Source: Marsupella aquatica (lineage: Eukaryota; Plantae; Marchantiophyta). From it: a stretch of DNA of 64,000 nucleotides. The notes below the pieces were generated by a model. That model was given only the letters and a program-made list of their open reading frames with translations, made no database searches and had not been told where the DNA came from. The stretch spans positions 4,526,480-4,590,479 of the forward strand of contig OZ316898.1 of the NCBI GenBank assembly GCA_973895155.1, given 5' to 3'. Below are positions 13,120-28,792 of the stretch, piece by piece. The position numbers were made by a program, and so were the translations under genes. Position 1 is the first letter of the stretch. Each line of letters starts with the position of its first letter.

Positions 13120-14895
13120 CAGCATTTTGGATTTCTCTTTGGTGAGCATAACTGGGAATGCTATATCCATCAGACATTTTTAAGTCTTTGTTGCCAAGGA
13201 CTGATTTCTGTGCGCGCAGCCTTCTTAAATTTTTTATAGATTTGAGCAGCGGCTAATTCAAGTCGAGGAGCTTCGGGATGATCTCGCTAGGATTTTTCGA
13301 AAATCAGGCAGAACGATCGGTGTCTTGCAAGCTGGATTAACTTAGAGCAACCGGTTCGATGATCATATAGACGAATTCACGTCCTCCTGAAGAGGTATGG
13401 GGTCGAATATCTAGTATGGCTCTTAGATTCGTCGGTGGGAGGTGTCTACTCGAAAGAAGATTATGAAAAATTCAATTGGCTGTAAAATTTCCTTCTTCGT
13501 GTAAAGTTATCGCAATTTTTCTGCAGAAATGACGATACGGTCTAGTTGGTTTTGGGCACGGAGTAGTTCAAATTTAGTTGCTTTCTTGTTGTTCACCTAG
13601 TTTCTGGTGCAAGAAACTATTTGGCAATGTTTTCATGGGGATAGCAACCTCGTTTGGATCACGATAATGATTTCTCTCAATTACATGACATCGGAGGTCA
13701 TCCACTAGATGCATTGCAGACAAAACTAGAGATTGCACACAGACTGGAAAGTGGACTGTATGCATTCACACAGCCACGTTGAGTTACTGCTGAACCAGGA
13801 CACAAGCCCTAAAGCATGAGAAAAGTGCGTTACTTTCTTAATGCGAAATCATGTTGTTAAACATTGCTTGCACAACAATCTTGTTGACGCGCAGTGCTTG
13901 TCCCTGGTTTCGAAATCAGTCTCAGGTTGAAAGTTAGGTTATGTGAAATGTGAACTTAGCCATCACTGTGGCATGAGCAGAGGATATACGTCCTGTATGG
14001 TACGCTGTTGCAGTGTGAAGATGTACCTACAAGAAGATAACAATGGTGCAATAATCGCATGGTACGAAAGGTAAAACAATGATTGTTCCTACACAAGAGA
14101 CTCATGACGAAAATTCAAGGATATAGTGAAGAAGGCGAAGCCAGTAAGTCTAGAATCCACACATTCTGTTCCTCTTCATGGTATGCAATCTATTCTGACC
14201 ATTTGTGTATGTATCTGCAAACCATTGCTATAGAGAGACTATGAGACTAGCCAACCACTGTCACCTTTGCTTTGGATTGAAGAATGGAGGCCATCAAAAT
14301 CCGTTCTCACGCATCTACATTTGGTTGTAGAACAAAACATTAGCACAGTTTTCCATAAATCCATCACTTTTGGTGAGTGGGAGTTTTCCTTCTACAGCAT
14401 CTGACATTACTAATTTGCTTCAAGCTCTCGCAGGCCCACTCGGAAACAGCTACTTTCAAAATTTCCCAGGATGTAGCATAGGGAAGATTATACCAGGATA
14501 AACTATGACTTTCATTTGGGGTCCCCATCGACCAAGCACTCTGAGACACTCCCAAGAAAATGAAATGTATGAAGGAAAGGTGCTATCTTAAGAAAAATAC
14601 AAAAATAATTATTCAGGGGGAATTTTGGATTGACATGCTATAATTTTCTCATCAAGAGTCAAATTTAGACAATTCATTACTTTTTCTGCCAACCTGAAAA
14701 CCCCACATGTCAGGCTAATCTGCAACTGTAGATTGGAAATAGGAAGTGAAAATTAAGTTAATATCTGCAAAATAAGTGGGTTAGCCTTCAAACTATAGCC
14801 AAGTGCAATTTTAAGTTATTTGTAATTATATTTTGTCATGGTCCGCTTACTTGGTTTTTCTTGAGCTAAAAATTTGAGGTATATGGAGGGCAAGA

Positions 14896-15094
14896 AGTTC
14901 ACCGGACTCCCACATAGACTTCAATACTCATGTCTTGAAGCAGGTACTTTCTGTGTCTCCACGGAGGGAATAACTCAAGAGATATTTTCAGGGGCAGAAG
15001 TTTGTGGCACTCCCACACCCCCACCCTAAACCCTAAACTCCAGTAATAACTCCAATACTAATGTCTTGAAGCAATAACTTTCTATGTCTCCACT
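14896..15094. repeat. ~85-bp degenerate tandem repeat, split by the PHIS element and continuing at 27499-27604
   Basis: Units ACTCCCACATAGACT...TGTCTCCAC..AG..GA.T.ACTCAAG at ~14896-14970, 15050-15094 plus 27502-27520, and 27517-27604. Confidence 0.75.
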
Positions 15095-15547
15095 AGGGCG
15101 TCTCAAAGTAGCGGGACGACAAAAAGTTGCGGTATTACTGCTCATCCCGTAATTGAAGTTACGGGACCCAGTTACGGGTTCCAACTTGGGCAGGGCGGCA
15201 GCTTTGACCCGCTCCGTTAGGCTTGACTTACGGGTTAATACCCGCTCAAAGCTGAGCGCCCTTACCTTCCCTCTCGGACCATGGGCTGTCAGGCGGCTTT
15301 TGGAGAAGCCACGTCCTCCCGATTCTTGGCCGTTCTAAGTCCAAAGCAACTGATGCCCTCCATTGCACATCCTGAATATGATGGAGTTCAAACCAAACTT
15401 TTAAATGAATTCAAACTGGTGCGTCGTATGTACTTCATGGAGCCCTGATTTCAGCATTGCAAAGCTCAAGAAATTTATGTGCAGAGATCGTTGTGTGTCG
15501 AAGATAAGGCAATCGCAGATTGAAGCACAAAATTACCTGTGACGGTG

Positions 15548-17220
15548 ATGGCTCCAGATAGCCCCGCTGCTCCAGCATATAAGCCTGAGGATGATTCTGG
15601 CTTTCCAGCACCTTCGCATTCAGTGACGGGCTTAGCAATCTCGCTAGGGATTTTTTACAATTTTCAACCTTGGAGTCCAAGTGCTCAACAGATTGCGCCT
15701 CCTGCTCACCGATTCCTCTCAGCTCACATGGCAAATTCAGGTAGCGCTGGATATGTTAGAGGTCGAGGAACATTCAATGCTCCACGACCTGTTCCAACTA
15801 GGGGCAAGGAGACGGCAGACAAATTTCGTCTGAAAGACCAAGACTACGAGCTCATTGTCAGCTACTTGGAAATTCCGGAAAATTTCAATGCCATTCACGG
15901 TGCAGGCAAGAAGACAAGGGTGGGAGGCAAGTATCAGAGCAAGGCCACTGTTTTCCGTCAGATGTTGGCTGCATTGCAACACCATGGATTTCCGCGAGAG
16001 ATAACTGCACCCAATTTGACAAAAAGATTTCAACGATTTGTGAAGCGTTACAAGGATGCCAGAGACGTGAAGTTCCAGTCGGGTGGAGGCCTCACCGAAG
16101 ATGACCTCAGAATGGGCCTTACAGAGGACAAGTTGAACCGACTCTGTCCATACTTTGAGCGCATGCATACCCTCTACGGAGAGAGGCCCAATGTTGCTCC
16201 AGAAGTCCTTGGAGATGTTGGAATTGATGAGACTGACCTGGTCCTGCTGGAGGAGTCAGGTGACACCGAGGGATACTCGCAATATGGCGAGGAACTCCTT
16301 TACCCAGATGTTATCCCAGCTCACACCCCTACTATCATCCTTGAAGGTAAGAAATTGTGGCCTTAGTTGCAATGAAGATGTGACATACATGTTACTTGTA
16401 ATGACATTTCCACTCGCTTCTCAATTCATAATATGTGCAAGCGACATTTGTTCTTTTAGAATCATGATATCCTTGCTTAAAGTAATACTCCTTCCATGAT
16501 TGCCTTGCTCCAGATACACCTGTGCAATCAGAAGCAGAATCGATGCACACCAGTCCCCTAGATGTACCGATGCCTGACACCCTCAGGAACCCGCCCTCTC
16601 GTGAGAATTTCTGGCAACACCTAGAGGGTATTACTGCACACAACATCCACATTGTTTCTGATACATGTCAGTGCCACCAGTGCAAGAATTATGTGAATGT
16701 GGACACTGGGGAGACTAGGCCTCTGCCCACTGGTAGTGCAACTGGTGCTCACAATCCCTTGCAGCCTCGCAAGAACAATGTCCAAGCCACTCCACCGAGA
16801 CCGCCACCAACTCCGAAGGGTACCAAGACAGCAGCACAGGCAGCAAAAGAGGCCCAAGAGAACAAGAAACCATCATTCTCAACAATCTATGCAGATAGGA
16901 TCGCCCAAAAATCAAACTATCGAAAAGAGTTAATCCACTCTAGAGACAAGTGGAAACTGCAGGACCTTGAAGAACGTCGTGCTGCTAGATTGGAGGCTCG
17001 TCAAGAAGCTCTCCTAAAGCGACGTCTCGATCGGAAGCATGAGCTTGTACTACAGCAGGTTGCATCTGAAAATGCCCTTAAAAAGGTTAAGGCTGAGCAA
17101 GATCATGCAGTCGAGATGTCAAAATCGGCTCAACGTATGGCATTGTTGACTACACTCTTTGGCAGCTCCAAGACTCCTGACGAGATTAGGACATTGCTGC
17201 CCATTGTAGACGCAGAGTAG
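15548..17220 (+). CDS. PHIS partner protein (Myb/SANT-like DNA-binding region plus C-terminal coiled coil), 2 exons
   Basis: Exon 1 ends at 16346 (GAAG|GTAAG); in-phase acceptor CCAG|16514. Motifs LIVSYLEIPENFNAIHG, LCPYFERMHTLYGERPNV and C-terminal GSSKTPDEIRTLL are typical of Harbinger partner ORFs. Start may be 15548 or 15728. Confidence 0.75.
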
Positions 17221-17736
17221 ATGCAGGATAGCATGCAGCTTAGAGTAATTGTTGTCACATGGTGGGTTCCTATAAATGTCACAATCATTATTCTTGATCT
17301 TCAATAAATGACACGGTTTTGCACAAGTATGAATGACATAATTTTGCACCCGAAGGGACTATGGAGCATATTTGTGCATACAAGAAACTTCTGAACACAT
17401 ACACACGTAAATCCAGGCATAATGGGCTACACTCTAAACTGTAATTCAGATTGATGTCCTACGTACTAGATAGATGATTGTCTAAATGAACTCCCCAAAA
17501 TTTGCAGAAGTACACCCAATCCCTTGTTCATACAAGAAATTAAAAGTGTTGTTGGCAAAATTGAAGTTGAGTAGTGCAGCGATTGTTGGCTACAAGTTTG
17601 TATAAAACAATTGTGGAGCAGACTGCAGTTACAAAATTTAATTGGCACAACACATGTTTTTTGACAAGATACAAAGGAACTCACTAGTTCCTGATTTATT
17701 TATAACAATTTGCAGAAGATTTTCCACATACAAAGA

Positions 17737-18157
17737 TGTTGAGCATAGACGACGATCGCAACGGCAAGCCCATGAACCATCCAACGCACAATAGTCGACA
17801 CAAGAGATACGTGGTTCACCTCCTTGAGACTACGTCCACGGGAATACACAAGAGAGCCTTACTGAACTCTAAGCCCGTCGGCTATACCGAGTCTCCACAG
17901 TGTAAGCTCTCCCTATCTCTCAAGTGGCTCCATAACAATGAGCCTTGGTTCTACCTCTCCAAGCACACATGCCTCTTATGATATAGTGTGCAACTTAGTT
18001 GTACCTAACCACATAGTTGTACCTAATCACGTAGTTGTACCTAACCACATAGTTGTACCTAATCACGTAGTTGTACCTAACCACGTAGTTGTACCAACCC
18101 ACGTTGTTGTACCAACCACGTCATACCTAACCTAGACGTAAGAGTAAATACCCAACA
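17737..18157 (-). repeat. Copia 3' LTR (421 bp; seven 18-bp units)
   Basis: TGTTGAGC...CCCAACA with tandem GTAGTTGTACCTAACCAC-like units. Confidence 0.95.
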
Positions 18158-18170
18158 ATCTTCCCCTTGA
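18158..18170 (-). promoter_or_regulatory. Polypurine tract of the copia element
   Basis: Minus strand TCAAGGGGAAGAT directly before the 3' LTR. Confidence 0.85.
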
Positions 18171-18348
18171 CTCTGGTCTAGGGGAGAGTAATACTGCCAA
18201 TGTATATGATCCCTCAGCGGGAAGTTCTGGACAGAAACCAAACCGGTTTCCCTCTCTAACTAGAGCAAACCAGAACTAAGCCGTAGCCTAATACATAGGA
18301 ATGAGGAAGAGCATATATCAGTAATTACAATGAATGTTTAAGAAAACT

Positions 18349-21300
18349 CTACTTGTGATGCAATTGCAAAACCTGCAATACGTCACGGTGTCTAGAGAAA
18401 CTCTCCAAAGGAATCACTTTGGTAAATGCGTCAACCGGGTTGAGTTTACCATCAATCTTGACTAGCTCAAACAAATTATCAGACACAGCCTGCCTGATAA
18501 AATGGTACCTGACGTCAATGTGCTTCACTCTGCTGTCCATCACCTGGTTCACAGCAAGGTGGAGCGCACTTTGACTATCACAATGGAGCTTCACATTCCC
18601 CTGTGGCAATCCCATTTCAGTGATAAGTCTATCCAACCAAATCGCTTCCTTTGCTGCTTCCGCAGCTGCAACATACTCCGCTTCTGTAGTAGACTGAGCA
18701 ATACACTTTTGCAAAGTAGACCTCCAACTTATGCATCCACCGCCAAGTGTGAACACGTATCCTGTTGTTGATCTCCTTCGGTCCAAATCTTGTCCATAGT
18801 CAGAATCTACATAGCCAATCAATGATCTAGCATTCTTTGCATTCGCATCAAATAAAAGACCATGATCCACGGTACCCTTCAAGTACCTGATAATCCACTT
18901 CACTGCTTCCCAGTGTACCTTCCCTGGATTCGACATGTACCTGCTCACCTTGCCCATAGCCATGGCAAGATCAGGTCTAGTGCAAGTCATCAAATACATG
19001 AGACTCCCCACTGCCTTGTCATATGGAACCTTTGACATCAACCCCTTCTCTGTGTCATCCGTAGGACAGAACGCTGATGATAACTTGAAGTGTGGAGCCA
19101 ACGGGGTACTTACTGGCTTGTTATTCTCCATGTTGAACCTTGCAATTACCTTCCTCGCATAACTGCTCTGCGTCAACCATAGCTTGCCAGCCTCCAAGTC
19201 CCTAGTGATCTCCATACCCAAAATCCTCTTAGCTGACCCTAAGTCCTTCATCTTAAACTCTGCACTAAGCAGTGCCTTGAGCTTAACAATCTCAGACCTA
19301 TCCTTGGCTGCAATTAGCATGTCATCCACATAAAGTACTAAAACAATGAACCCAAAGACAACATTCTTCACCGGTTTCAAATACACACAAGGGTCAAATA
19401 CACTTCTGTGAAAACCTTGTGACCGAATCCAATCGTCAAACCGCTTGTTCCACTGTCTTGGTGACTGCTTCAACCCATACAAGGATTTCAGCAATCTGCA
19501 AACCAATTCCTCCTGTCCTCTCTTCACAAAACCTAGCGGTTGTCTTATGAAGATCACCTCTTCCAATGTGCCATAGAGGAAAGCTGTGACAACATCCATC
19601 TGATCTAGGAGCAGACCAAACATTACAACAAGTACACACAATAGTCGTATTGTAGAGTACTTAGCAACTGGTGAGAAGACCTCATTGTAATCCACACCTT
19701 TCTCTTGTGTGAATCCCTTTGCTACCAATCTAGCCTTGTAGACCTTCGATCCACCTCCTATGGAATTATCCTTCAGCTTGTAAATCCACTTGCTGTCCAC
19801 CACTTGCTGACCCTTAGGCAGCTTAACAAGCTCCCAAGTTTTGTTGTCCTTTAGTGACTGCATCTCCGTTTGCATTGCTGCAGTCCACTTCTGCTTCTCT
19901 TTTGAAGCACTTGCCTCATGAAATGAAGAAGGTTCTCCTTCTTCCAAAATTAACGCATCACCCTCATCATCAGCTGTAAAATCATCCTCTTGCAGTTGAA
20001 ATGAATCAACCCACTGTCCATACCTTGATGGAGCGCGTACAGTGCGACCAAATGTTCTTCTAGCCGATGACTCCGGTTGATCTGCGTGTGCTGGTACAAT
20101 TTGAAGCTCAACAGCATCCACTTGTTGCTCACCAGCATCAACAAACTCCTCTGGTTCCTCTGGCACAGGAACCAGCTCCATAATTGGAGCAACTCCTTCT
20201 CTCCGGTCATGCACCTCATAACCAATCTCCCCCTCAACGAGATCCGGGATAGGAGATTTTCCTTTGTCAGTACGGGAGACCTGAGTATTCTCCCCCTCCT
20301 TCAATAATCTGGATTCATTGAAGGAAACATCCCTACTGACAACGAGCTTACAGGCAATAGGATCCCATAGCCTATAGGCTTTCACACCACTCTGGTACCC
20401 AAGAAAAACACATTTCCTGGAGGTAGGATCCAACTTGGTCCTATTCTGCTTTGGTGTGAGAGCATATGCATCACTTCCAAAAATTACCAAGCCATGATAG
20501 TCTGCTTGCCGCTTATAGCGCATCTCAAACGGCGTTTTGAAATTGATAGCACTAGAAGGAGAAAGATTTACCAAATAAGCTGCGGTATTGACAGCTTCTG
20601 CCCAAAATTCTTGTGGTAAACCTGATTGGCTCAACATACTCCGTGACCGCTCCAACAGTGTCCGATTGAGCCTCTCAGCGACACCATTCTGCTGCGGAGT
20701 ATAAACTGTGGTGAGATGGCGAGTTATCCCCTGTTCTGAATAGTACTCTTCAAATTCCATTGAAGTGTACTCCCCGCCGTTGTCTGACCTCAGACTCTTC
20801 ACCCTTGTATCCAAACACTTGATCGTGTTTCCAGTCTGATTCTCCACCTGGGCCTTCCACTTCTTAAAAATGGACAAGACATCAGACTTATGCGTCATGA
20901 AATAAATCCACACAAATCTTGAGTAATCATCAATAAATGATACATAGTACAACTTTCCAGAGTGTGAGGGAGTCGGGGATGGACCCCACACGTCACTATG
21001 TATGTACTCAAGAACCGCTTTGGAACGATGAGTTCCAACACCAAAAGCACGACGATGCTGCTTTCCAAGAATGCAATGCTCACAAAACTCTAATTTACAA
21101 GATTGCAAATCAGAAATGAGTCCATTCTTCCGTAAGATAGCCAAACCCTTCTCACTCATGTGGCCTAGCCGTGAATGCCACAGTTGAGTCATCTCCTCGT
21201 GAGACTTGGTTACATTGGCCTCTCCACATACAGTATTGCCCTGTAACACATACAAATTCTTTTGTCTACTCCCCTTCAAAATCACTGTCTCTCCCGACCT

Positions 21301-21621
21301 GACTTGAAGTTCACCATCAATAACGCTCCATTGATGACCATTTGAATCCAACACACCGAGTGAAATCAGATTCTTACGCATGCCAGGTACATACCTGACT
21401 CCGGACACTGTGCGCACAGCGCCATCAAACATTTGAATCTTCACAGACCCAATTCCCTCAATTTGACAGGAGTGATCATTTCCCATCAGAACTGAACCGT
21501 TTGAAACAGAGTAAGAACTGAAAAACTCATGAATGTAACAAATATGAAAAGAGCAAGCACAATCAAGAATCCACACATCATCTGCTCTCCTAGATGACGT
21601 GCACAGGGCATACCCCCAGCT
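18349..21621 (-). CDS. pol: Copia pol (protease, GAG-pre-integrase, integrase, RT, RNase H), in frame with gag after a single UGA
   Basis: WILDCACSFH, LWHSRLGH, HSDVWGP, RSDNGGEY, QNGVAER, KARLVAKGF, SLYGLKQSPRQW, LYVDDMLI, STTEAEY, KHIDVRYHFIR; open throughout. Confidence 0.95.
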   Translation of the reverse strand, partial: SWGYALCTSSRRADDVWILDCACSFHICYIHEFFSSYSVSNGSVLMGNDHSCQIEGIGSVKIQMFDGAVRTVSGVRYVPGMRKNLISLGVLDSNGHQWSVIDGELQVRSGETVILKGSRQKNLYVLQGNTVCGEANVTKSHEEMTQLWHSRLGHMSEKGLAILRKNGLISDLQSCKLEFCEHCILGKQHRRAFGVGTHRSKAVLEYIHSDVWGPSPTPSHSGKLYYVSFIDDYSRFVWIYFMTHKSDVLSIFKKWKAQVENQTGNTIKCLDTRVKSLRSDNGGEYTSMEFEEYYSEQGITRHLTTVYTPQQNGVAERLNRTLLERSRSMLSQSGLPQEFWAEAVNTAAYLVNLSPSSAINFKTPFEMRYKRQADYHGLVIFGSDAYALTPKQNRTKLDPTSRKCVFLGYQSGVKAYRLWDPIACKLVVSRDVSFNESRLLKEGENTQVSRTDKGKSPIPDLVEGEIGYEVHDRREGVAPIMELVPVPEEPEEFVDAGEQQVDAVELQIVPAHADQPESSARRTFGRTVRAPSRYGQWVDSFQLQEDDFTADDEGDALILEEGEPSSFHEASASKEKQKWTAAMQTEMQSLKDNKTWELVKLPKGQQVVDSKWIYKLKDNSIGGGSKVYKARLVAKGFTQEKGVDYNEVFSPVAKYSTIRLLCVLVVMFGLLLDQMDVVTAFLYGTLEEVIFIRQPLGFVKRGQEELVCRLLKSLYGLKQSPRQWNKRFDDWIRSQGFHRSVFDPCVYLKPVKNVVFGFIVLVLYVDDMLIAAKDRSEIVKLKALLSAEFKMKDLGSAKRILGMEITRDLEAGKLWLTQSSYARKVIARFNMENNKPVSTPLAPHFKLSSAFCPTDDTEKGLMSKVPYDKAVGSLMYLMTCTRPDLAMAMGKVSRYMSNPGKVHWEAVKWIIRYLKGTVDHGLLFDANAKNARSLIGYVDSDYGQDLDRRRSTTGYVFTLGGGCISWRSTLQKCIAQSTTEAEYVAAAEAAKEAIWLDRLITEMGLPQGNVKLHCDSQSALHLAVNQVMDSRVKHIDVRYHFIRQAVSDNLFELVKIDGKLNPVDAFTKVIPLESFSRHRDVLQVLQLHHK

Positions 21622-22656
21622 TCATAAAACATACTCATCATTGAGTAAATCAGCTTCTCCATCAGCCCTAGCCACATTTGCCGATGAAGTTTCCGCTGCC
21701 TTTCCCTTACAGTCTCGCTTGAAGTGTCCAACTTGGTTGCACTTCCAACATGTCACTTGCCTCCTCTGAGGGGATTTACCCTTGGACTTAGATCTGGATT
21801 TAGATCTAAACTGGGTTCTACGGTCCCCAGTTGGTCGTTGCATACTCCTCCCACGGTTAACATTGAGGGCAGCACCAGATAATGAAGGCTGTGACGTGAT
21901 GTGCATCTTCTGCTGAAGATCATCACTAAGCAGAGAACTTACCACGTCATTGTATGAAATGGTATCCCTATCACGATGCAACAACACTCGTGATAGGGAC
22001 TGGTAAGATGGAGGCAATGAACTAAGAAGCTGCAGAGCCTTCGTCTCATCATTCAAAGTCTCCCCAAGGTTTTCCAAGTCAACGACCATGTCGTTGAAAG
22101 CATCCACATGGTCTTGCAACTTCGTACCAGATTCCTTCATCCTGAAACTCATCAGTTTGTAGGAAGTGTAGAGCCGGTTCGACAACTCCTTGCGGTGATA
22201 CTTGCTCTGCAATTCCGCAAACAAGGACATGCAATCCTTATGTGCACCTAACTGCTTGATGATGGGAGGCATGAGATAGAGTGTAACACACCACACTCCC
22301 TGCTCCTGCATGCGGTCCCATTGTTTCTCATCAACATCGTCTTCACGAGGGCTCAGCAGTTGGCCCATCCCTAACGCATAAAGTACTCCCTTCACCTGCT
22401 TCTCCCATAGCAAGTAGTCAGAGCGCCCATCATACTTTGTCACTTCATACTTGGGTCCCCCAAGCTTGAAAGTCCCCATCTTCTTCTTTACCGTGAGCTC
22501 CGGTAGTAGTACTGCTTCCTCCACCACACGCCGCACCGGTGATGGTATCGGTGTCACGTGCTCTTCCTCTTGCTCCTCTCTCTGCCCCTGAAACCTCCGC
22601 GGTGATCCTCGTGCTTCAAGTTCCACGTCTTCAAAAAACTCCTCCGAATCACTCAT
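21622..22656 (-). CDS. gag: Copia gag with CCHC zinc knuckle
   Basis: KYEVTKYDGRSDYLLW, LLSSLPPSYQSL, CWKCNQVGHFKRDC. Confidence 0.93.
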   Translation of the reverse strand: MSDSEEFFEDVELEARGSPRRFQGQREEQEEEHVTPIPSPVRRVVEEAVLLPELTVKKKMGTFKLGGPKYEVTKYDGRSDYLLWEKQVKGVLYALGMGQLLSPREDDVDEKQWDRMQEQGVWCVTLYLMPPIIKQLGAHKDCMSLFAELQSKYHRKELSNRLYTSYKLMSFRMKESGTKLQDHVDAFNDMVVDLENLGETLNDETKALQLLSSLPPSYQSLSRVLLHRDRDTISYNDVVSSLLSDDLQQKMHITSQPSLSGAALNVNRGRSMQRPTGDRRTQFRSKSRSKSKGKSPQRRQVTCWKCNQVGHFKRDCKGKAAETSSANVARADGEADLLNDEYVL

Positions 22657-23796
22657 ATGAGAAAGTCACAAAAAATGTTGTTTTTCACAACTTCTCAAAA
22701 AACTCGAAACTCAACACCGCCGCGTAGCCCACAAAGCTAGGAGTCCAATACTGAAAACCAAAATCAAAATCGAAATTTGACGGAAAAGTTATTCAAATTT
22801 CGGTCGAGGTGGGTAAAACCTTGGGAAACTCCCCCGTTTTGACCACCTCAGGGAATAACCAAAATACCAAGTACAACCCGTTGTCGGAATTGCGATGTGA
22901 TTGGTGCGCTGCATTGCCAACTTCAATGGCTACGACCTCGCGGAAAAATATCCAAAAAAGTTACCGTTCGGCGGATGAAATCTTTGTCGGACGGTCAAAA
23001 AATAGCTCTCTGGTTTTTTGGAATATTCTATGACCCTTGTACAGGCCCTGTGGGAATTTTGGAAGAACAATCGAGGGGCTGACATGTGTCCTCGAACCCC
23101 CAAAACCCCCTACCACCCTTCGTCGTCGAAATCTGGTCGCGCGCGCAAAAAATACACACGGCAGAATGTACCCCTCGACACCAAACGCAAGATATCTCAC
23201 TCGGGTTTTGACGAAATCAAGATCCGATTTCAGATTTGGAAACTAGACTCCGAGGCGATGAAGATCGATATAAGAAGCACCCAAAACGAGGAAAGAACGA
23301 GGGAGAAAAAAATTGGTAAAGATGACAGATTTCTCTCAATTGCCATAGCCAATTTCGAATCAGTTTTTCAAAGAGAAAAAAATGGTACCTTGTCAACAAC
23401 GAATGTTGATCAATTGCACTTGGTGCCGTCACCAAGTCCAACAAGGTAATTGATTTTGCTTAGCCTTCCTCTTTGCATCAAAGAGCCAATCCCGGACTCA
23501 AAAACAATCGTCTTGCCTCAATCTCTCCGTTGAGTCAAAACACTTGACGCTTCTCCCTCCGAGTCGATTGCCAACTTTCTTCACAAAATCTAGAACGACG
23601 AAAACTTAGATCTCTCTGCACCACGAGCTCCGTTCAATGATTTCTTCACACCGTTAGAAAGCTCTTGCCCTGATCTATCTGTTGAGCCCATAAACTCCAA
23701 GTTCCATGCGATGGAACTCTGGAAAATCCACCAACACTCAACGCTGGAAAAACCGTCATGAAATCCCGTCACGAACACACGTCACCTCCCAAGCAT

Positions 23797-23808
23797 GCTC
23801 TGATACCA
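23797..23808 (-). promoter_or_regulatory. Primer-binding site for initiator tRNA-Met
   Basis: Minus strand TGGTATCAGAGC, 2 nt inside the 5' LTR boundary. Confidence 0.93.
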
Positions 23809-23810
23809 AT

Positions 23811-24267
23811 TGTTGAGCATAGATGACGATCGCAACGGCAAGCCCATGAACCATCCAACGCACAATAGTCGACACAAGAGATACGTGGTTCACCTCCTTG
23901 AGGCTACGTCCACGGGAACACACAAGAGAGCCTTACTGAACTCTAAGCCCGTCGGCTATACCGAGTCTCCACAGTGTAAGCTCTCCCTATCTCTCAAGTG
24001 GCTCCATAACAATGAGCCTTGGTTCTACCTCTCCAAGCACACATGCCTCTTATGATATAGTGTGCAACTTAGTTGTACCTAACCACATAGTTGTACCTAA
24101 TCACGTAGTTGTACCTAACCACATAGTTGTACCTAATCACGTAGTTGTACCTAACCACATAGTTGTACCTAATCACGTAGTTGTACCTAACCACGTAGTT
24201 GTACCAACCCACGTTGTTGTACCAACCACGTCATACCTAACCTAGACGTAAGAGTAAATACCCAACA
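23811..24267 (-). repeat. Copia 5' LTR (457 bp; nine 18-bp units)
   Basis: Near-identical to 17737-18157. Confidence 0.95.
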
Positions 24268-24368
24268 AGAGATAGCACCAGGTCATCGATTGGATGAGCC
24301 AAGTGCTATGTACTACAAAATAATTGATTCGGGAGGTAGAATGTAATACTTCTACACTAATGTGGAAC

Positions 24369-25869
24369 TTAGTTGCTACGCATATTCAAGCAGCCCCCTG
24401 GCTGCTTGTGAAATTGAAGTGCATATTCCATAATAATGGTTTGCAAGGTTGTTCGAGGTGGTAAAGGACGCCTTCTTCGAATGTTTGGCAAAGTAGGTTG
24501 CTCCTCCCGTTCTGCATCGCTATCTGAGTCATTGTCCAGAAGAATTTCGGAATCTTCTTCGGTCCACATGTCATTACGTGTAATGACAAAATTGTGCAAT
24601 CGTGCACACATGATAATCCATCGAATTAGCCAGGCAATCTCCTTCTTGGATCTCAGTTGGGTACGCATCTCTCTGAGGGAATGCCACCTAGATTTCAAAA
24701 CACCAATGCAATGCTCATTGGTTACCCTACACTTTGCTACACACATGTTGAAGTCCTCCCGCTCCTGGCTGGTATCTGCTCTTTTGTATGCAGAAACCAT
24801 GTGATCCATGGGCTCATATCCACTGTCACCCAAAAGATATTGACCACGGCTAAATAAATGCCTTTGAGCTTGATTGCGATACAACGATGACCTTTTGTAG
24901 CATGTCAGATCAGACACGGACCCGGGCAATCCTGCAAGACACCAAACCCATGTGAACATAGCTTAGTTTGCTAAACATAAAACCTCTAGGGTATACAAAA
25001 ATACCGGCAGCCTTGAGAATGAGGTCAGATGTTAAAAGCATCTTACCAGTGAATAAGTATAAGATCTTTCGCTTGTAGTCACAAACCACCTGGGCATTGA
25101 TTGAGTAGCGGCACTTTCTATCAAAGTAGCATTCCCCAGAGTTTGCTGGCCGCTGAGAAAGAGGGATTAAGGTACCGTCAATGAGCCCAACACAGCCTGG
25201 AAAACCTTTTGTGGAAAACTCTTGAGCAATTGCTTTGCGTTCAGCCCTTGCAGGCCATGTCAGGGATTCCTTCAGTGCATCCTCCAGGGCATGGAAACAA
25301 CGATTTGTGAAGTTGCATAGAGAACCATTACTTACGCCCCAGGTTGGAATCAATCGATTCAGGCAGGAACCGTTTCCTTCATGGCCCAACCGATCAAGCA
25401 TAACAGCAAGTTGCCACTCCACGGGGGCCTGTTGGTTTTGTGAGTCGCTGTAGAAAACAGGGTGCTGGTCAATCAGGTGAACTAGTGCAAAGAAGGATGC
25501 CTTGTCCATCCGAGTCATCTGTCAAAAAATTAATGGAGGGAGCTTGTCAAAATACTGTAAAGCAAACTCCCTTGATTTACTTGTTACTTTCTTGTCAACA
25601 AAAAACCTGGTGCTCTCCATCATGGCATACAACTCCATCAGGTCATGTGGAGCCCCCTCCAATTCAAGAATGTCGGCCTCATCCTCAGAGTCATCTGATG
25701 AATAGAGATCATGGTCTGAATCCGAATTAGATAGTCTGAACTCATCTAGGGAGTCCACATCGCTACCTGAGGTTTGCAAGTCATCATCTGAGCTTTCCAG
25801 AAGAATGTTCAAGACCAACTTATCACGCACAGCCTGCAATTCTTTCTGTCGGTATGATTGTCGAGGCAT
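24369..25869 (-). pseudogene. Harbinger-type DDE (DDE_Tnp_4/HARBI1-like) transposase, 2 exons, one nonsense codon
   Basis: MPRQSYRQ start at 25869; F*QMTRM (TGA at 25522-25524, probably CGA); GCVGLIDGTLIP, YFDRKCRYSINAQVVCD; intron 24932-25046 (GT-AG); GLPGSVSD, YLLGDSGY, RVTNEHCIGVLKSRW, LHNF. Confidence 0.9.
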
Positions 25870-26184
25870 CGTCTCTCCACAAGGAGTTGTTGGAATGAAT
25901 TGTTCTATCGTGAACGCTAGAGAAGTAGGCAACATGTCAGATGAATTCATACCAATTATGGAATAAAAAGAATCCATGCATAATGAAATGACACAGAGAG
26001 TAACACCAACAATAAACATATATCACATTCCAATGACAGAGAGCAATTCATTGTCGTAAGCAAATATAGGTTGTTGTGACAAGAATAGAAGGTGTACATC
26101 AATTATTATATAAAAATCTGTTACATTTTTCCCTATGACGGATGTACCAAAGGGCACAAAACAAATATGCACACATAACACACA

Positions 26185-26871
26185 CTAGCCATCCAAATCA
26201 TAAAACTTCAAAGACCGAACGAGGTCCTCTATAGCTTCTCCAACAGGTTTTGCTGGTTTTTTGTCTGTTTTCTTTGGTGTGCTACCCGATGTGCTGCCGT
26301 GGCTTCCTATAGGGGAATGTGGAGTGACTCGCTCCCTGTGCTTCACATTACACTGTGGAGAAACAAAGCATGCCTGGGTGGGAGGGAGATGCACTACAGG
26401 ACGTTCGTCAAAGAATGTCAAATGCTGGACTTTGATTTGAAAATCATAAACAGATAGCCAAATCTTAACCCTCGGTGACTCCTGCATAATCGAATGCAAG
26501 AACTCGATCTGGGCATGCTCTGTGCACATCGAAAAGTTTATTGCATCACAATCTAGGAGAATTTCTGCAACATCCCAGACTTGAGCAGTGACAGGTTTCA
26601 CGTCCCCATGAATTGCGTCAACGATGCGTACACCAAATCTGAAAGCATACCTCCCTGGAAGCATGTGGTCACACTTGGGTCCGAATTCAAGGGATTTCGC
26701 ACACATTCGGCCTGTTTTCAGTCTGTAAGGACAAGCTAAATAGACGAATCTACGAGGATGGGGATTAGTCGCCACATAGTTCACTACCCACACTAGAGAA
26801 GGGGAGAAAACTTCATTGGCTCCTGCGGCCCTTCTTTCCTCCACTTCGCCTAGTGTAGTCCATGAAACCAT
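26185..26871 (-). CDS. RPA70 C-terminal (DBD-C)-like OB-fold/Zn protein carried inside the PHIS element
   Basis: FVYLACP(x8)CAKSL...CDH...RYAFRFGVRIVD...AQVWDVAEILLDCDA parallels RPA1 Y.ACP...C.KKV...C..C...RY......D...F...AE.I.G..A. Open 228 codons; basic S/T-rich tail. Confidence 0.68.
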   Translation of the reverse strand: MVSWTTLGEVEERRAAGANEVFSPSLVWVVNYVATNPHPRRFVYLACPYRLKTGRMCAKSLEFGPKCDHMLPGRYAFRFGVRIVDAIHGDVKPVTAQVWDVAEILLDCDAINFSMCTEHAQIEFLHSIMQESPRVKIWLSVYDFQIKVQHLTFFDERPVVHLPPTQACFVSPQCNVKHRERVTPHSPIGSHGSTSGSTPKKTDKKPAKPVGEAIEDLVRSLKFYDLDG

Positions 26872-27685
26872 TCTCAAACTCTGCAATGCAGTAGCACTAC
26901 TCAGTTGAAACACGGCGCACAAATATACCAGAATGAGCAAGTAATCGAAATGCATTCCAACAGCACAAGCTTCAGAAAACAGACTTCACCTGGCACTGCA
27001 TGTATGGCTCCTTGCAGCCCCGCTGGATTTCTAGATTGCGTAAGCTCAATCGCCTGCACAAGCTCGATCGCCTGCACAAGCTCGATCGCCTGCCGATTCC
27101 AGAATCGATGCACCCACGTCTCCCAACTAGGTCCACACCAAAGCCCTGTCTGTGCTCTCGAAATGAGCAATCGAGTGAACCAGGCAAGACTCCCAGTCGA
27201 AGTTAGCGATCGAGTGAACCAAGTTCCAAGTCGAAGATGCAGATCGGGAGTACTGAAAATCCGAGCATGACACACCCGCATCAGTCATAGTTTGAACGAT
27301 CTTCAAAAAGGCATACAATGTTCGCGCTTCAACTTGGGCCATCCCTCCCGTTAGCTACAGTTCACGGGTTACGTCTTAGGGTCACGGCACAAAATTACGG
27401 GAGCCGGTTTTGGCCTCCCATAACCCTTATGGAGTAGTCTGTAACTTCCAAGTTACGGACCGGTGTTAACGGGCCCGACCTCTACTCTGAGACGCCCTAC
27501 TAAGTAGAGTAACTCAAGTTCACTGTACTCCCACATAGACTACAATTGTAAAATCTTTTGAGGCACTGCACCTTTTATGTCTCCACCTAGTAGAGTCACT
27601 CAAGTGAAACAAAGTCTCACCATGCTTGAAAATAATTAATGCTGCTTTTAAAAGATTTGAGATGGCTCTTAGGTCTAACTTTAAT

Positions 27686-28577
27686 GAGTTATATGCTTGA
27701 TGGGCCCTTTGGTGTAACTTCTTACCTGATAGCTCCCTATGAAACTTGTCTTACCTAATAGGGCCCCTGTTATACTTTTGTGTCAGTTGTTCTAGCAGTC
27801 ACTCTAACAAATGTTTTCTTGATGCAATGATCAACTGCACCGTCAAGCCCCACACCCAACTTTGCATGGTCGAACAAAATGGTCAAACGATGCAATTATG
27901 GGAACCGCAGAATTGCAGCTGCCGCTGTCCAAACTGCGAAGTGAAGACAATATGGATTATGTCTTCGGATGTGAACCACGGACATTACACAAACTGCGAA
28001 GTGGAGACAATATGGATTATGTCTTCGGATTTGAACCGCGGACGTTACACAACTGCGAAGTGAAGATAATATGGATTATGACTTCAGATTTGAATTTTTA
28101 CTTATCATGGGTAGTCATAGGGCTTACTTTCACGTGCTCCACATAGGTTGTCTTGACGTTTTTGATCTACCACTATCAATTTGGAGGACATGTGCGGTCG
28201 TTATGATCCTGGTACTTCCACTAGCACTTTTTTTGTCACTGGCCATTGGGCATTCGCTTCTGTCACTAGGCACTAGACATCGAGCTTGGAATACATAATG
28301 CAATATGTCTTCATGGCTAAACCCGAGCATCGAGTATCAAGCTTGGAATACATAATGCAATATGTCTTCATGGCTAAATCCGCCCCCACCCTATTTAGAA
28401 CCCCCGTTGTGGTTAACTACACTGTTTGGCACCTCACAAGAACACTGAGTACGACTTATTAAGAGGGAGACTATTAGGTAAAAAAGGTTTTGTAGGGGCC
28501 TATTGGGTAAAAAACGTTTTATAGGGGCCCATCAGATAAGAACGTTTCACCAGAGGGCCCATCAAAGCATATATCTC
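27686..28577. mobile_element. Non-autonomous Mutator-like element (MITE) with long TIRs
   Basis: ~90-bp imperfect TIRs (GAGTTATATGCTTGATGGGCCC... / ...GGGCCCATCAAAGCATATATCTC); 10-bp flanks TAACTTTAAT / AAACTTTGAT. Confidence 0.72.
27931..28092. repeat. ~60-bp tandem repeat x~2.7 inside the MITE; a ~50-bp duplication follows at 28278-28380
   Basis: AACTGCGAAGTGAAGACAATATGGATTATGTCTTCGGAT units at 27931, 27991 and 28050. Confidence 0.88.
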
Positions 28578-28792
28578 AAACTTTGATTGATTGACCAACT
28601 TTATTGTCCTGGATTTGCACCTAAATTGCAAAAAAGGTTGTTAATGTTATTGGTTAACTGTTTAGCCCGCCAACTTTCCTTGTGGTAGCCAAAGATTAGT
28701 TTCCCCAACTTTAATGGGAGTTCATTATCCTAGATGGCTGAGCTTTGAGACACCCTATTGATCTAGTCCAAAATTTAGTCTCTTAGTGGGGA

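Follow-up and report, generated by a model that had tools for sequence, protein, structure and literature searches.

What is a relative of RPA70, a protein that binds single-stranded DNA (ssDNA), doing inside a cut-and-paste transposon? A transposase and a Myb-like partner are regarded as the two proteins that Harbinger-type transposons require, and RPA-like genes are treated as a hallmark of the rolling-circle Helitrons. The question is raised by a stretch of 64,000 nucleotides (nt) from the liverwort Marsupella aquatica, hereafter the window, whose positions are the coordinates used throughout and whose sequence is eukaryotic and plant-like in character. It holds a transposon of the Pangu type, a group of the PHIS elements, and between the terminal inverted repeats (TIRs) of this transposon lies an open reading frame (ORF) for a protein resembling DNA-binding domain C (DBD-C) of RPA70, a zinc-binding oligonucleotide/oligosaccharide-binding (OB) fold. 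The OB ORF probably codes for a genuine protein and belongs, as an integral third gene that has long been retained, to a liverwort lineage of Pangu-type elements.

The open reading frame and its family

The frame is open on the minus strand from 26185 to 26955 (256 amino acids, aa) and contains the strings YLACP, CAKSL, CDH, RYAFRFGVRIVD and VWDVAEILLDCDA. Because its homologues begin at the second methionine, at 26871 (MVSW...), the conserved coding sequence is 26185-26871 (228 aa). The 28 codons upstream of this methionine are not conserved, and in read contigs from other copies the similarity to the window stops at 26872, one base upstream of the ATG (joint 26872->27346). The gene lies within the TIRs of the element, where it follows the 5' subterminal repeats and precedes the transposase gene. 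With a start and a stop of its own, it is co-oriented with the DDE_Tnp_4 transposase and ends 315 nt upstream of the transposase ATG at 25869. The initial annotation, made from the sequence without database searches, had described an open third gene of a cut-and-paste PHIS element, inside the TIRs, co-oriented with the transposase and directly upstream of it. Its ORF coordinates and quoted strings check out, and the TIRs, the ACT target-site duplication (TSD) and the DDE_Tnp_4 transposase are all there. No second copy of the OB gene was found in the six-frame translation of the window, by tblastn or with the family HMM (hidden Markov model).

The ORF is not a product of chance, because a phmmer search of 1.84 billion representatives returned 81 matches, ten of them below 1e-30, most of which are 200-270 aa long and align from residue 1. 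Those of the 81 relatives that carry a species name are all from liverworts (Calypogeia fissa and Riccia sorocarpa). Canonical RPA70 is absent from the 81 matches, and the OB gene is therefore no recent copy of a host RPA70. Pfam gave no match to the window protein even at E 1. The absence of canonical RPA70 from the phmmer matches bears out the strong divergence that the initial annotation had claimed. A word-indexed homologue search returned nothing with the single protein and, with a profile, only two members that were already known. One apparent member of 1023 aa (P0031) was discarded as a translated tandem repeat. A family outside the coverage of Pfam is now defined, with 81 representative clusters and named members that are all liverwort.

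An alignment of 54 of the 81 relatives (A1) was used both for residue conservation and for structure prediction. Y44, C47, C57, C67, H69, F79, D85 and Q121 are invariant or nearly so, and the four residues of the Cys-X9-Cys-X9-Cys-X-His motif (C47, C57, C67 and H69) are each kept in at least 50 of the 54 sequences. The alignment also keeps aromatic residues at 77 and 99 and lysine or arginine at 59 and 78. Nine coding sequences that were compared all have open frames, with saturated synonymous divergence (dS) and a non-synonymous divergence (dN) of 0.35-0.7; this pattern in the sequences points to long-term purifying selection on the OB gene. With dS saturated, NG86 estimates between diverged members mostly failed, and the close pair L003 and L004 (99.2% identity) differs at four sites, all of them non-synonymous, so few that dN/dS is uninformative there.

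A predicted fold like that of RPA70 DBD-C

AlphaFold2 (AF2) was useless on the single sequence (predicted local distance difference test, pLDDT, 34) and reached a pLDDT of 87.4 on the 54-sequence alignment. The model has a strand-rich OB domain at residues 1-156 with a helical insert at 102-130, a disordered, basic linker resembling a nuclear localisation signal at 157-209, and a conserved C-terminal amphipathic helix at 210-222 (pLDDT about 91). When Foldseek compared this model with the PDB, the first match was human RPA70 DBD-C (1l1o_F, E 7.9e-6), followed by other RPA trimer cores (8rk2_A), Teb1 OB-C, yeast Rfa1 and Pyrococcus RPA. VIA-align against 48,161 chains gave Z scores of 13.6 for Teb1 OB-C, 13.2 for Ustilago maydis RPA70 and 12.9 for human RPA70, as against 7-8 for unrelated or generic OB folds; the top matches cover 136-139 residues at a root-mean-square deviation of 2.7-3.3 and up to 23% identity, the last figure being that of human RPA70 439-599 against model residues 1-156. 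The OB barrel superimposes over the whole domain.

The relationship is fainter in sequence. CDC24_OB3 is matched by 6 of the 54 members, with a best E of 1.2e-4, and Rep_fac-A_C (PF08646) by 2, all below threshold, so that by sequence score the family stays under the Pfam gathering threshold of Rep_fac-A_C. A phmmer search of the PDB with the single protein gave chance matches only, and the sole match of the family profile there was Rfa1 DBD-C (E 0.11), in an alignment that spans the zinc ribbon together with the aromatic LWLTLFD strand. In that alignment the putative zinc ligands 1 and 3 fall on Rfa1 cysteines, and the conserved aromatic residue of the family falls on the LWLTLFD strand. In the ESM Atlas, 24 of the 30 nearest clusters were Rep_fac-A_C (score 0.92, 181 shared features). 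The likeness to the zinc-binding OB fold DBD-C, which the initial annotation had read from short motifs, is therefore borne out by the fold (AF2, Foldseek and VIA-align) and more weakly by profiles and language-model features.

Residues 1-156 are thus predicted, on solid grounds, to adopt the fold of RPA70 DBD-C, an OB barrel with a zinc ribbon. As in DBD-C and in the OB-C domain of the telomeric paralogue Teb1, the barrel has a helical insert and, after its first strand, a putative zinc-ribbon insertion. Unlike RPA70, the window protein stands alone at 228 aa, without DBD-F, DBD-A and DBD-B, and is encoded by a transposon. Its family has C-X9-C-X9-C-X-H as putative zinc ligands, where DBD-C of RPA70 has four cysteines at another spacing. 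About 50 disordered residues precede its C-terminal helix, where in RPA70 the helix that enters a three-helix bundle with RPA32 and RPA14 comes directly after the barrel.

Linkage to the transposase and its limits

Is the OB gene part of the transposon, or does it merely happen to lie in this copy? The window copy itself is dead and non-autonomous. Its transposase is interrupted at 25522-25524 by an in-frame TGA, opposite an arginine codon in L003 (CGC) and in L002 (CGA), which fits a C-to-T change at a CpG, and the nonsense codon together with a copia retrotransposon inserted into the element means that this copy is no longer autonomous. Because the copy is defective, its open OB frame alone says little.

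The contexts of relatives come from exact look-ups of their proteins. L003, a run contig of 5,965 bp, holds the OB gene, the transposase and two opposite-strand partner ORFs in the order of the window. Its identity to the window is 48% for the OB gene, 53%, 76% and 61% for the N-terminal part, core and C-terminal part of the transposase, and 52% and 39% for partner ORFs 1 and 2, respectively. In L002 an OB gene (39% identity) is followed by co-oriented DDE_Tnp_4 genes, in L013 (42%) by an internally deleted transposase, and in L015 (32%) by a frameshifted one. The order of OB gene then transposase thus recurs in four diverged elements besides that of the window, with OB identities of 32-48%, and the full synteny of OB gene, transposase and Myb-like partner in one. 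The initial annotation had proposed looking for the ORF in other copies, and it is present there. The OB stop lies about 200-315 nt from the conserved transposase start (MPR...), which reads MPRQSYRQ in the window and MPRIS in L003 and L002; as each protein has its own start, the two are not a fusion.

Furthermore, the two genes appear to have diverged together. OB identity is 48% between the window and L003, 39% between the window and L002, and 35% between L003 and L002, and the corresponding values for transposase exon 1 are 66%, 45.5% and 45.5%, so the divergence ranks of the two genes agree. A quick maximum-likelihood tree places all five linked OB genes in a single clade of 21 rows (SH-aLRT support 96). 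In read contigs from three runs and two organisms, the depth over the OB stretch is like that of the rest of the element, which is multi-copy, and far above that of the low flank at 27522-27654. In a third organism, fragments of the OB gene occur that are 95-100% identical.

These observations bear on two ways in which the gene might be no part of the element at all. The first, that it is a functionless, transduplicated fragment of a host RPA70-like gene that is open by chance, would suit the decay of the rest of the window copy, with its nonsense codon and copia insertion, and the at least one other copy that has a 76-bp gap inside the OB ORF (joint 26526->26603). It is largely refuted, and I consider it very improbable, as the exhaustive search found no canonical RPA70 among its matches, and as frame, start codon, putative zinc ligands and position have all been kept despite saturated synonymous sites. 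The initial annotation had argued against recent passive capture from strong divergence combined with an open frame; positional conservation in diverged elements upholds its conclusion, but the open frame of a defective copy proves little. The second, that the gene belongs to a separate Helitron nested within the Pangu element, draws on the fact that RPA-like genes are typical Helitron cargo (PMC11417382). Against it, the space between the TIRs contains no ORF for a Rep/helicase (TC...CTRR ends were not searched systematically), and the adjacency of OB gene and transposase, with gaps of about 200-315 nt, recurs in L002, L003, L013 and L015. One ancient insertion fails to explain this recurrence unless it became part of the element, and a nested Helitron is the least probable of the origins weighed here, hardly to be credited. 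The outcomes that would have spoken most directly against the initial annotation (no OB-fold match, no ORF in other copies, a nested Helitron) are ruled out by the OB-fold match, by the ORF in those copies and by the evidence against nesting.

A number of points nevertheless weigh against the gene as an RPA70-like component of a Pangu transposon. Within the same clade, no related transposase lies within reach in L001 and L012 (Calypogeia fissa) or in the run contig L008, and a sister clade of 33 rows includes Calypogeia and Riccia sorocarpa genes in other settings; the OB gene is therefore not obligatorily tied to the Pangu transposon. The homologues were drawn from called ORFs, a sample biased to intact frames. 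As for expression, none of the runs that hold the locus is recorded as RNA. Pfam misses the window protein and the sequence links to RPA70 are weak (E 0.11 and 1e-4); the fourth putative zinc ligand is histidine and the ligand spacing is unlike that of RPA70; the OB domain is not basic (isoelectric point 6.3 here, family median 7.7); and the C-terminal helix, unlike the trimerisation helix of RPA70, is parted from the OB domain by some 50 disordered residues. Finally, a lone OB fold is usually weak in ssDNA binding.

Do the relatives without a transposase mean that the OB gene travels by itself? It could be a promiscuous cargo family, or a small mobile cassette of its own, with Pangu as one of several acquisitions, and its role may then be a general one of transposon against host, for instance against silencing or the DNA-damage response. 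No Harbinger transposase lies within 8 kb of the OB gene in L001, L006 and L012 (Calypogeia fissa), L008, or L010/L011, and the neighbours of such unlinked homologues have only RING, PHD or coiled-coil matches, or none. L007 (8001-15041, Riccia sorocarpa) has a distant, intron-containing member of the sister clade (357 aa) that runs convergent to a gene with a MULE domain; no TIR pair was found that encloses the two genes together. There is also a precedent, as TET/JBP genes have passed among 11 DNA-transposon lineages including Harbinger (PMC12730594). However, five of the eight examined members of the well-supported clade are linked to the same type of transposase in the same position, with congruent divergence; the window has no terminal repeats that enclose only the OB gene; and the non-Harbinger contexts are at most putative transposons. 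Promiscuous cargo is thus unlikely, although it is the strongest of the competing origins, and retention as a third gene of the Pangu lineage is the better account. For the three-component transposon that the initial annotation had envisaged, this means that a third gene has probably been retained in the Pangu lineage, but that the OB family is not exclusive to this type of transposon.

L001 (8001-9477, Calypogeia fissa) deserves separate mention. By E-value it is the second-closest relative among the matches listed, at 45-48% identity, and it has no transposase within 8 kb and an ORF with a PHD finger after it. Possibly an element has decayed here, or the gene has moved out of its transposon.

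Possible roles and known systems

What might such a protein do for its transposon? The OB protein would be made in trans together with the transposase and the Myb-like partner, and would act as a zinc-dependent ssDNA-binding or end-binding accessory factor in excision, integration or repair of the donor gap. Its C-terminal helix could serve for oligomerisation or dock onto the transposase, the Myb-like protein or host RPA32/RPA14; alternatively, the transposase or the Myb-like partner could use the OB protein as an adaptor. A role in ssDNA binding is a tentative suggestion, with somewhat less than an even chance in my estimation. The pointers to ssDNA binding are the conserved aromatic and basic positions 77, 78, 79 and 99 and the alignment to the Rfa1 strand. 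The roles that the initial annotation had envisaged (binding of ssDNA, competition for RPA32/14, targeting of replication forks, countering of silencing) are conjecture.

In RPA70 it is DBD-C that makes up the trimerisation core together with RPA32 and RPA14. The OB protein might be a mimic of RPA70, rather than itself a binder of ssDNA, and as such a mimic one that, by its C-terminal helix, joins or sequesters host RPA32/RPA14 and so alters checkpoint signalling or the choice of repair at excision sites. The best structural matches, 1l1o and 8rk2, are trimer cores, and the helix at 210-222 is conserved and confidently modelled. However, the long disordered linker detaches this helix from the OB domain, and the aromatic and basic residues conserved on the strand aligned to LWLTLFD fit contact with DNA at least as well, which leaves mimicry doubtful. 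Bolder still, and about as doubtful, is the idea that a DDE cut-and-paste lineage needs an RPA70C-like protein of its own. This protein would either cover an intermediate of IS5-like Pangu transposition that is single-stranded or has a flap, or take the place of RPA70 beside host RPA32/RPA14, in a complex that tilts the repair of excision gaps in favour of the element. If this were true, RPA mimicry could be a general strategy of transposons, and there would be a workable way into the RPA genes of Helitrons, which have long lacked an explanation.

A transposon-borne RPA-like gene is in itself a known kind of thing; what is new here is the DBD-C module alone, a cut-and-paste carrier of the Pangu type, and an unannotated liverwort family. 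RPA-like genes are a recurrent cargo of autonomous Helitron-like elements, with a function that is unproven (PMC11417382). The OB gene resembles these as a transposon-borne RPA70 homologue that has been kept recurrently. Unlike a Helitron, its carrier belongs to the DDE cut-and-paste type, has TIRs and a TSD of 3 bp and lacks RepHel, and the gene holds only the DBD-C module. That a DBD-C-only relative of RPA70 is conserved in a cut-and-paste lineage suggests that the benefit of the module is not tied to rolling-circle replication, and so small a single-domain protein could serve to test how the module acts.

Third genes are not without precedent in Harbinger-type elements. A SET gene occurs in HarbingerS, which is related to Harbinger2/Pangu, and a TET/JBP gene in PHISTA (PMC12730594). 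The initial annotation had stated that such elements normally encode only a transposase and a Myb/SANT partner; this agrees with the description of PHIS elements as a transposase and a second ORF (PMC4482050), to which these two cases are exceptions (PMC12730594). As in HarbingerS and PHISTA, an accessory gene has been kept beside a Harbinger-type transposase. The cargo there consists of chromatin- or DNA-modifying enzymes in oomycetes and rust fungi, whereas here it is an OB-fold module of the nucleic-acid-binding type in a land plant. Described Pangu elements average about 3.5 kb and have two ORFs (Han et al. 2015, PMC4482050). The window element shares with them a DDE_Tnp_4-type transposase, a 5'-ANT-3' TSD (here ACT), TIRs that start with AG and a second ORF, and differs in its extra OB-fold gene and in its length of about 5.8 kb without the copia insertion. 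Full-text literature searches found no paper on a Harbinger-type element with an RPA70, RPA-like or DUF223 gene, which is not proof of absence.

The element and its surroundings

The Pangu-type element extends from 15095 to 27498 (12.4 kb, or about 5.8 kb minus the nested copia), with ends that were read base by base. It begins AGGGCGTC and is flanked by ACT on either side. The inverted repeat that marks its ends (I4, 15094-15114 and 27479-27499) is 21 nt long and 90% complementary, and the 16-mer core of the TIR is present in the window only at these two ends. The Pangu group of PHIS is characterised by a 5'-ANT-3' TSD and by TIRs starting with AG or GG (PMC4482050), and the element is assigned to it because it has a 3-bp 5'-ANT-3' duplication and AG-starting TIRs. 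It also has the PIF/Harbinger/IS5-type DDE transposase (PF13359), matched in both exons.

Features of the element, in window coordinates
Feature	Position	Strand	Basis
Left TSD, ACT	15092..15094	.	Direct reading; fits the Pangu 5'-ANT-3' TSD (PMC4482050)
Left TIR (AGGGCGTCTCAAAGTAG...)	15095..15114	+	Inverted repeat I4
Putative Myb/SANT-like partner ORF, first part	15539..16366	+	Weak Myb_DNA-bind_4 match; 52% identity to the far-end minus-strand gene of L003
Partner gene region, second ORF or exon	16522..17220	+	39% identity to L003 3861-4553; order and orientation alike
Nested Ty1/copia retrotransposon	17737..24330	-	Interrupts the element; LTR (long terminal repeat) pair and gag-pol; ends approximate
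Transposase exon 2, C-terminal part of DDE_Tnp_4	24369..24931	-	PF13359 E 3.3e-19; acceptor TTGCAG|; 61% identity to L003
Transposase exon 1, in-frame TGA at 25522-25524	25047..25869	-	N-terminal part of PF13359, E 4.6e-6; ATG at 25869
RPA70 DBD-C-like OB-fold protein with putative zinc ribbon, coding sequence, 228 aa	26185..26871	-	Homologues, conserved residues, AF2 fold
Upstream extension of the maximal ORF, probably non-coding	26872..26955	-	Homologues start at the methionine at 26871
Candidate 5' untranslated region intron	26880..26989	-	GT..AG boundaries by eye
Right TIR	27479..27498	-	Inverted repeat and 16-mer
Right TSD, ACT	27499..27501	.	Direct reading

Read inward from the right TIR, the minus strand carries the OB ORF and then the two-exon DDE_Tnp_4 transposase. 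The exons were searched separately, their boundaries are approximate, and the stop in exon 1 was shown as an asterisk or replaced by X for comparison. Upstream of the OB gene, the candidate intron has the minus-strand boundaries CAG|GTGAAG and TTGCAG|, one base off the start at 26881 given in the initial annotation; its joint (26880-26989) was not found among the read contigs, none of the runs that hold the locus being recorded as RNA. Other copies of the element have 26873-27345 missing or replaced, as seen from the joints in read contigs. Within the same region, an 18-nt unit (AAGCTCGATCGCCTGCAC) is repeated in tandem about 2.9 times at 27042-27093.

At the opposite end, the match of the first partner ORF to Myb_DNA-bind_4 is weak and below threshold (E 0.02), and the ORF is conserved in L003; the second matched no Pfam family. 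GTTACGG motifs occur in subterminal positions on either side of the gene set in the window element (15158, 15171 and 27452) and in L003 (298, 311, 343 and 5932), and these shared motifs are candidate binding sites for the Myb-like partner. The copia element separates the transposase from the Myb-like genes. Its LTRs (17737-18036 and 23811-24110) are 99% identical, its gag-pol ORFs are at 18349-22656 on the minus strand, and its LTR 18-nt tandem arrays, at about 17957-18176 and 24031-24304, read as an ORF of VVPNH repeats.

Just outside the element ends, the flanks 14895-14936 and 27516-27557 are 81% alike, and the element was therefore inserted into another repeated sequence. Beside its right end lies a unit of about 890 bp (27685-28578) that resembles a miniature inverted-repeat transposable element, with TIRs of about 34 nt (27685-27718 and 28544-28578), inner inverted arms of 54 nt and three 60-nt tandem repeats (27930-28108). 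Because read contigs break at 27685/27686 and depth there is very high, this unit is a high-copy element.

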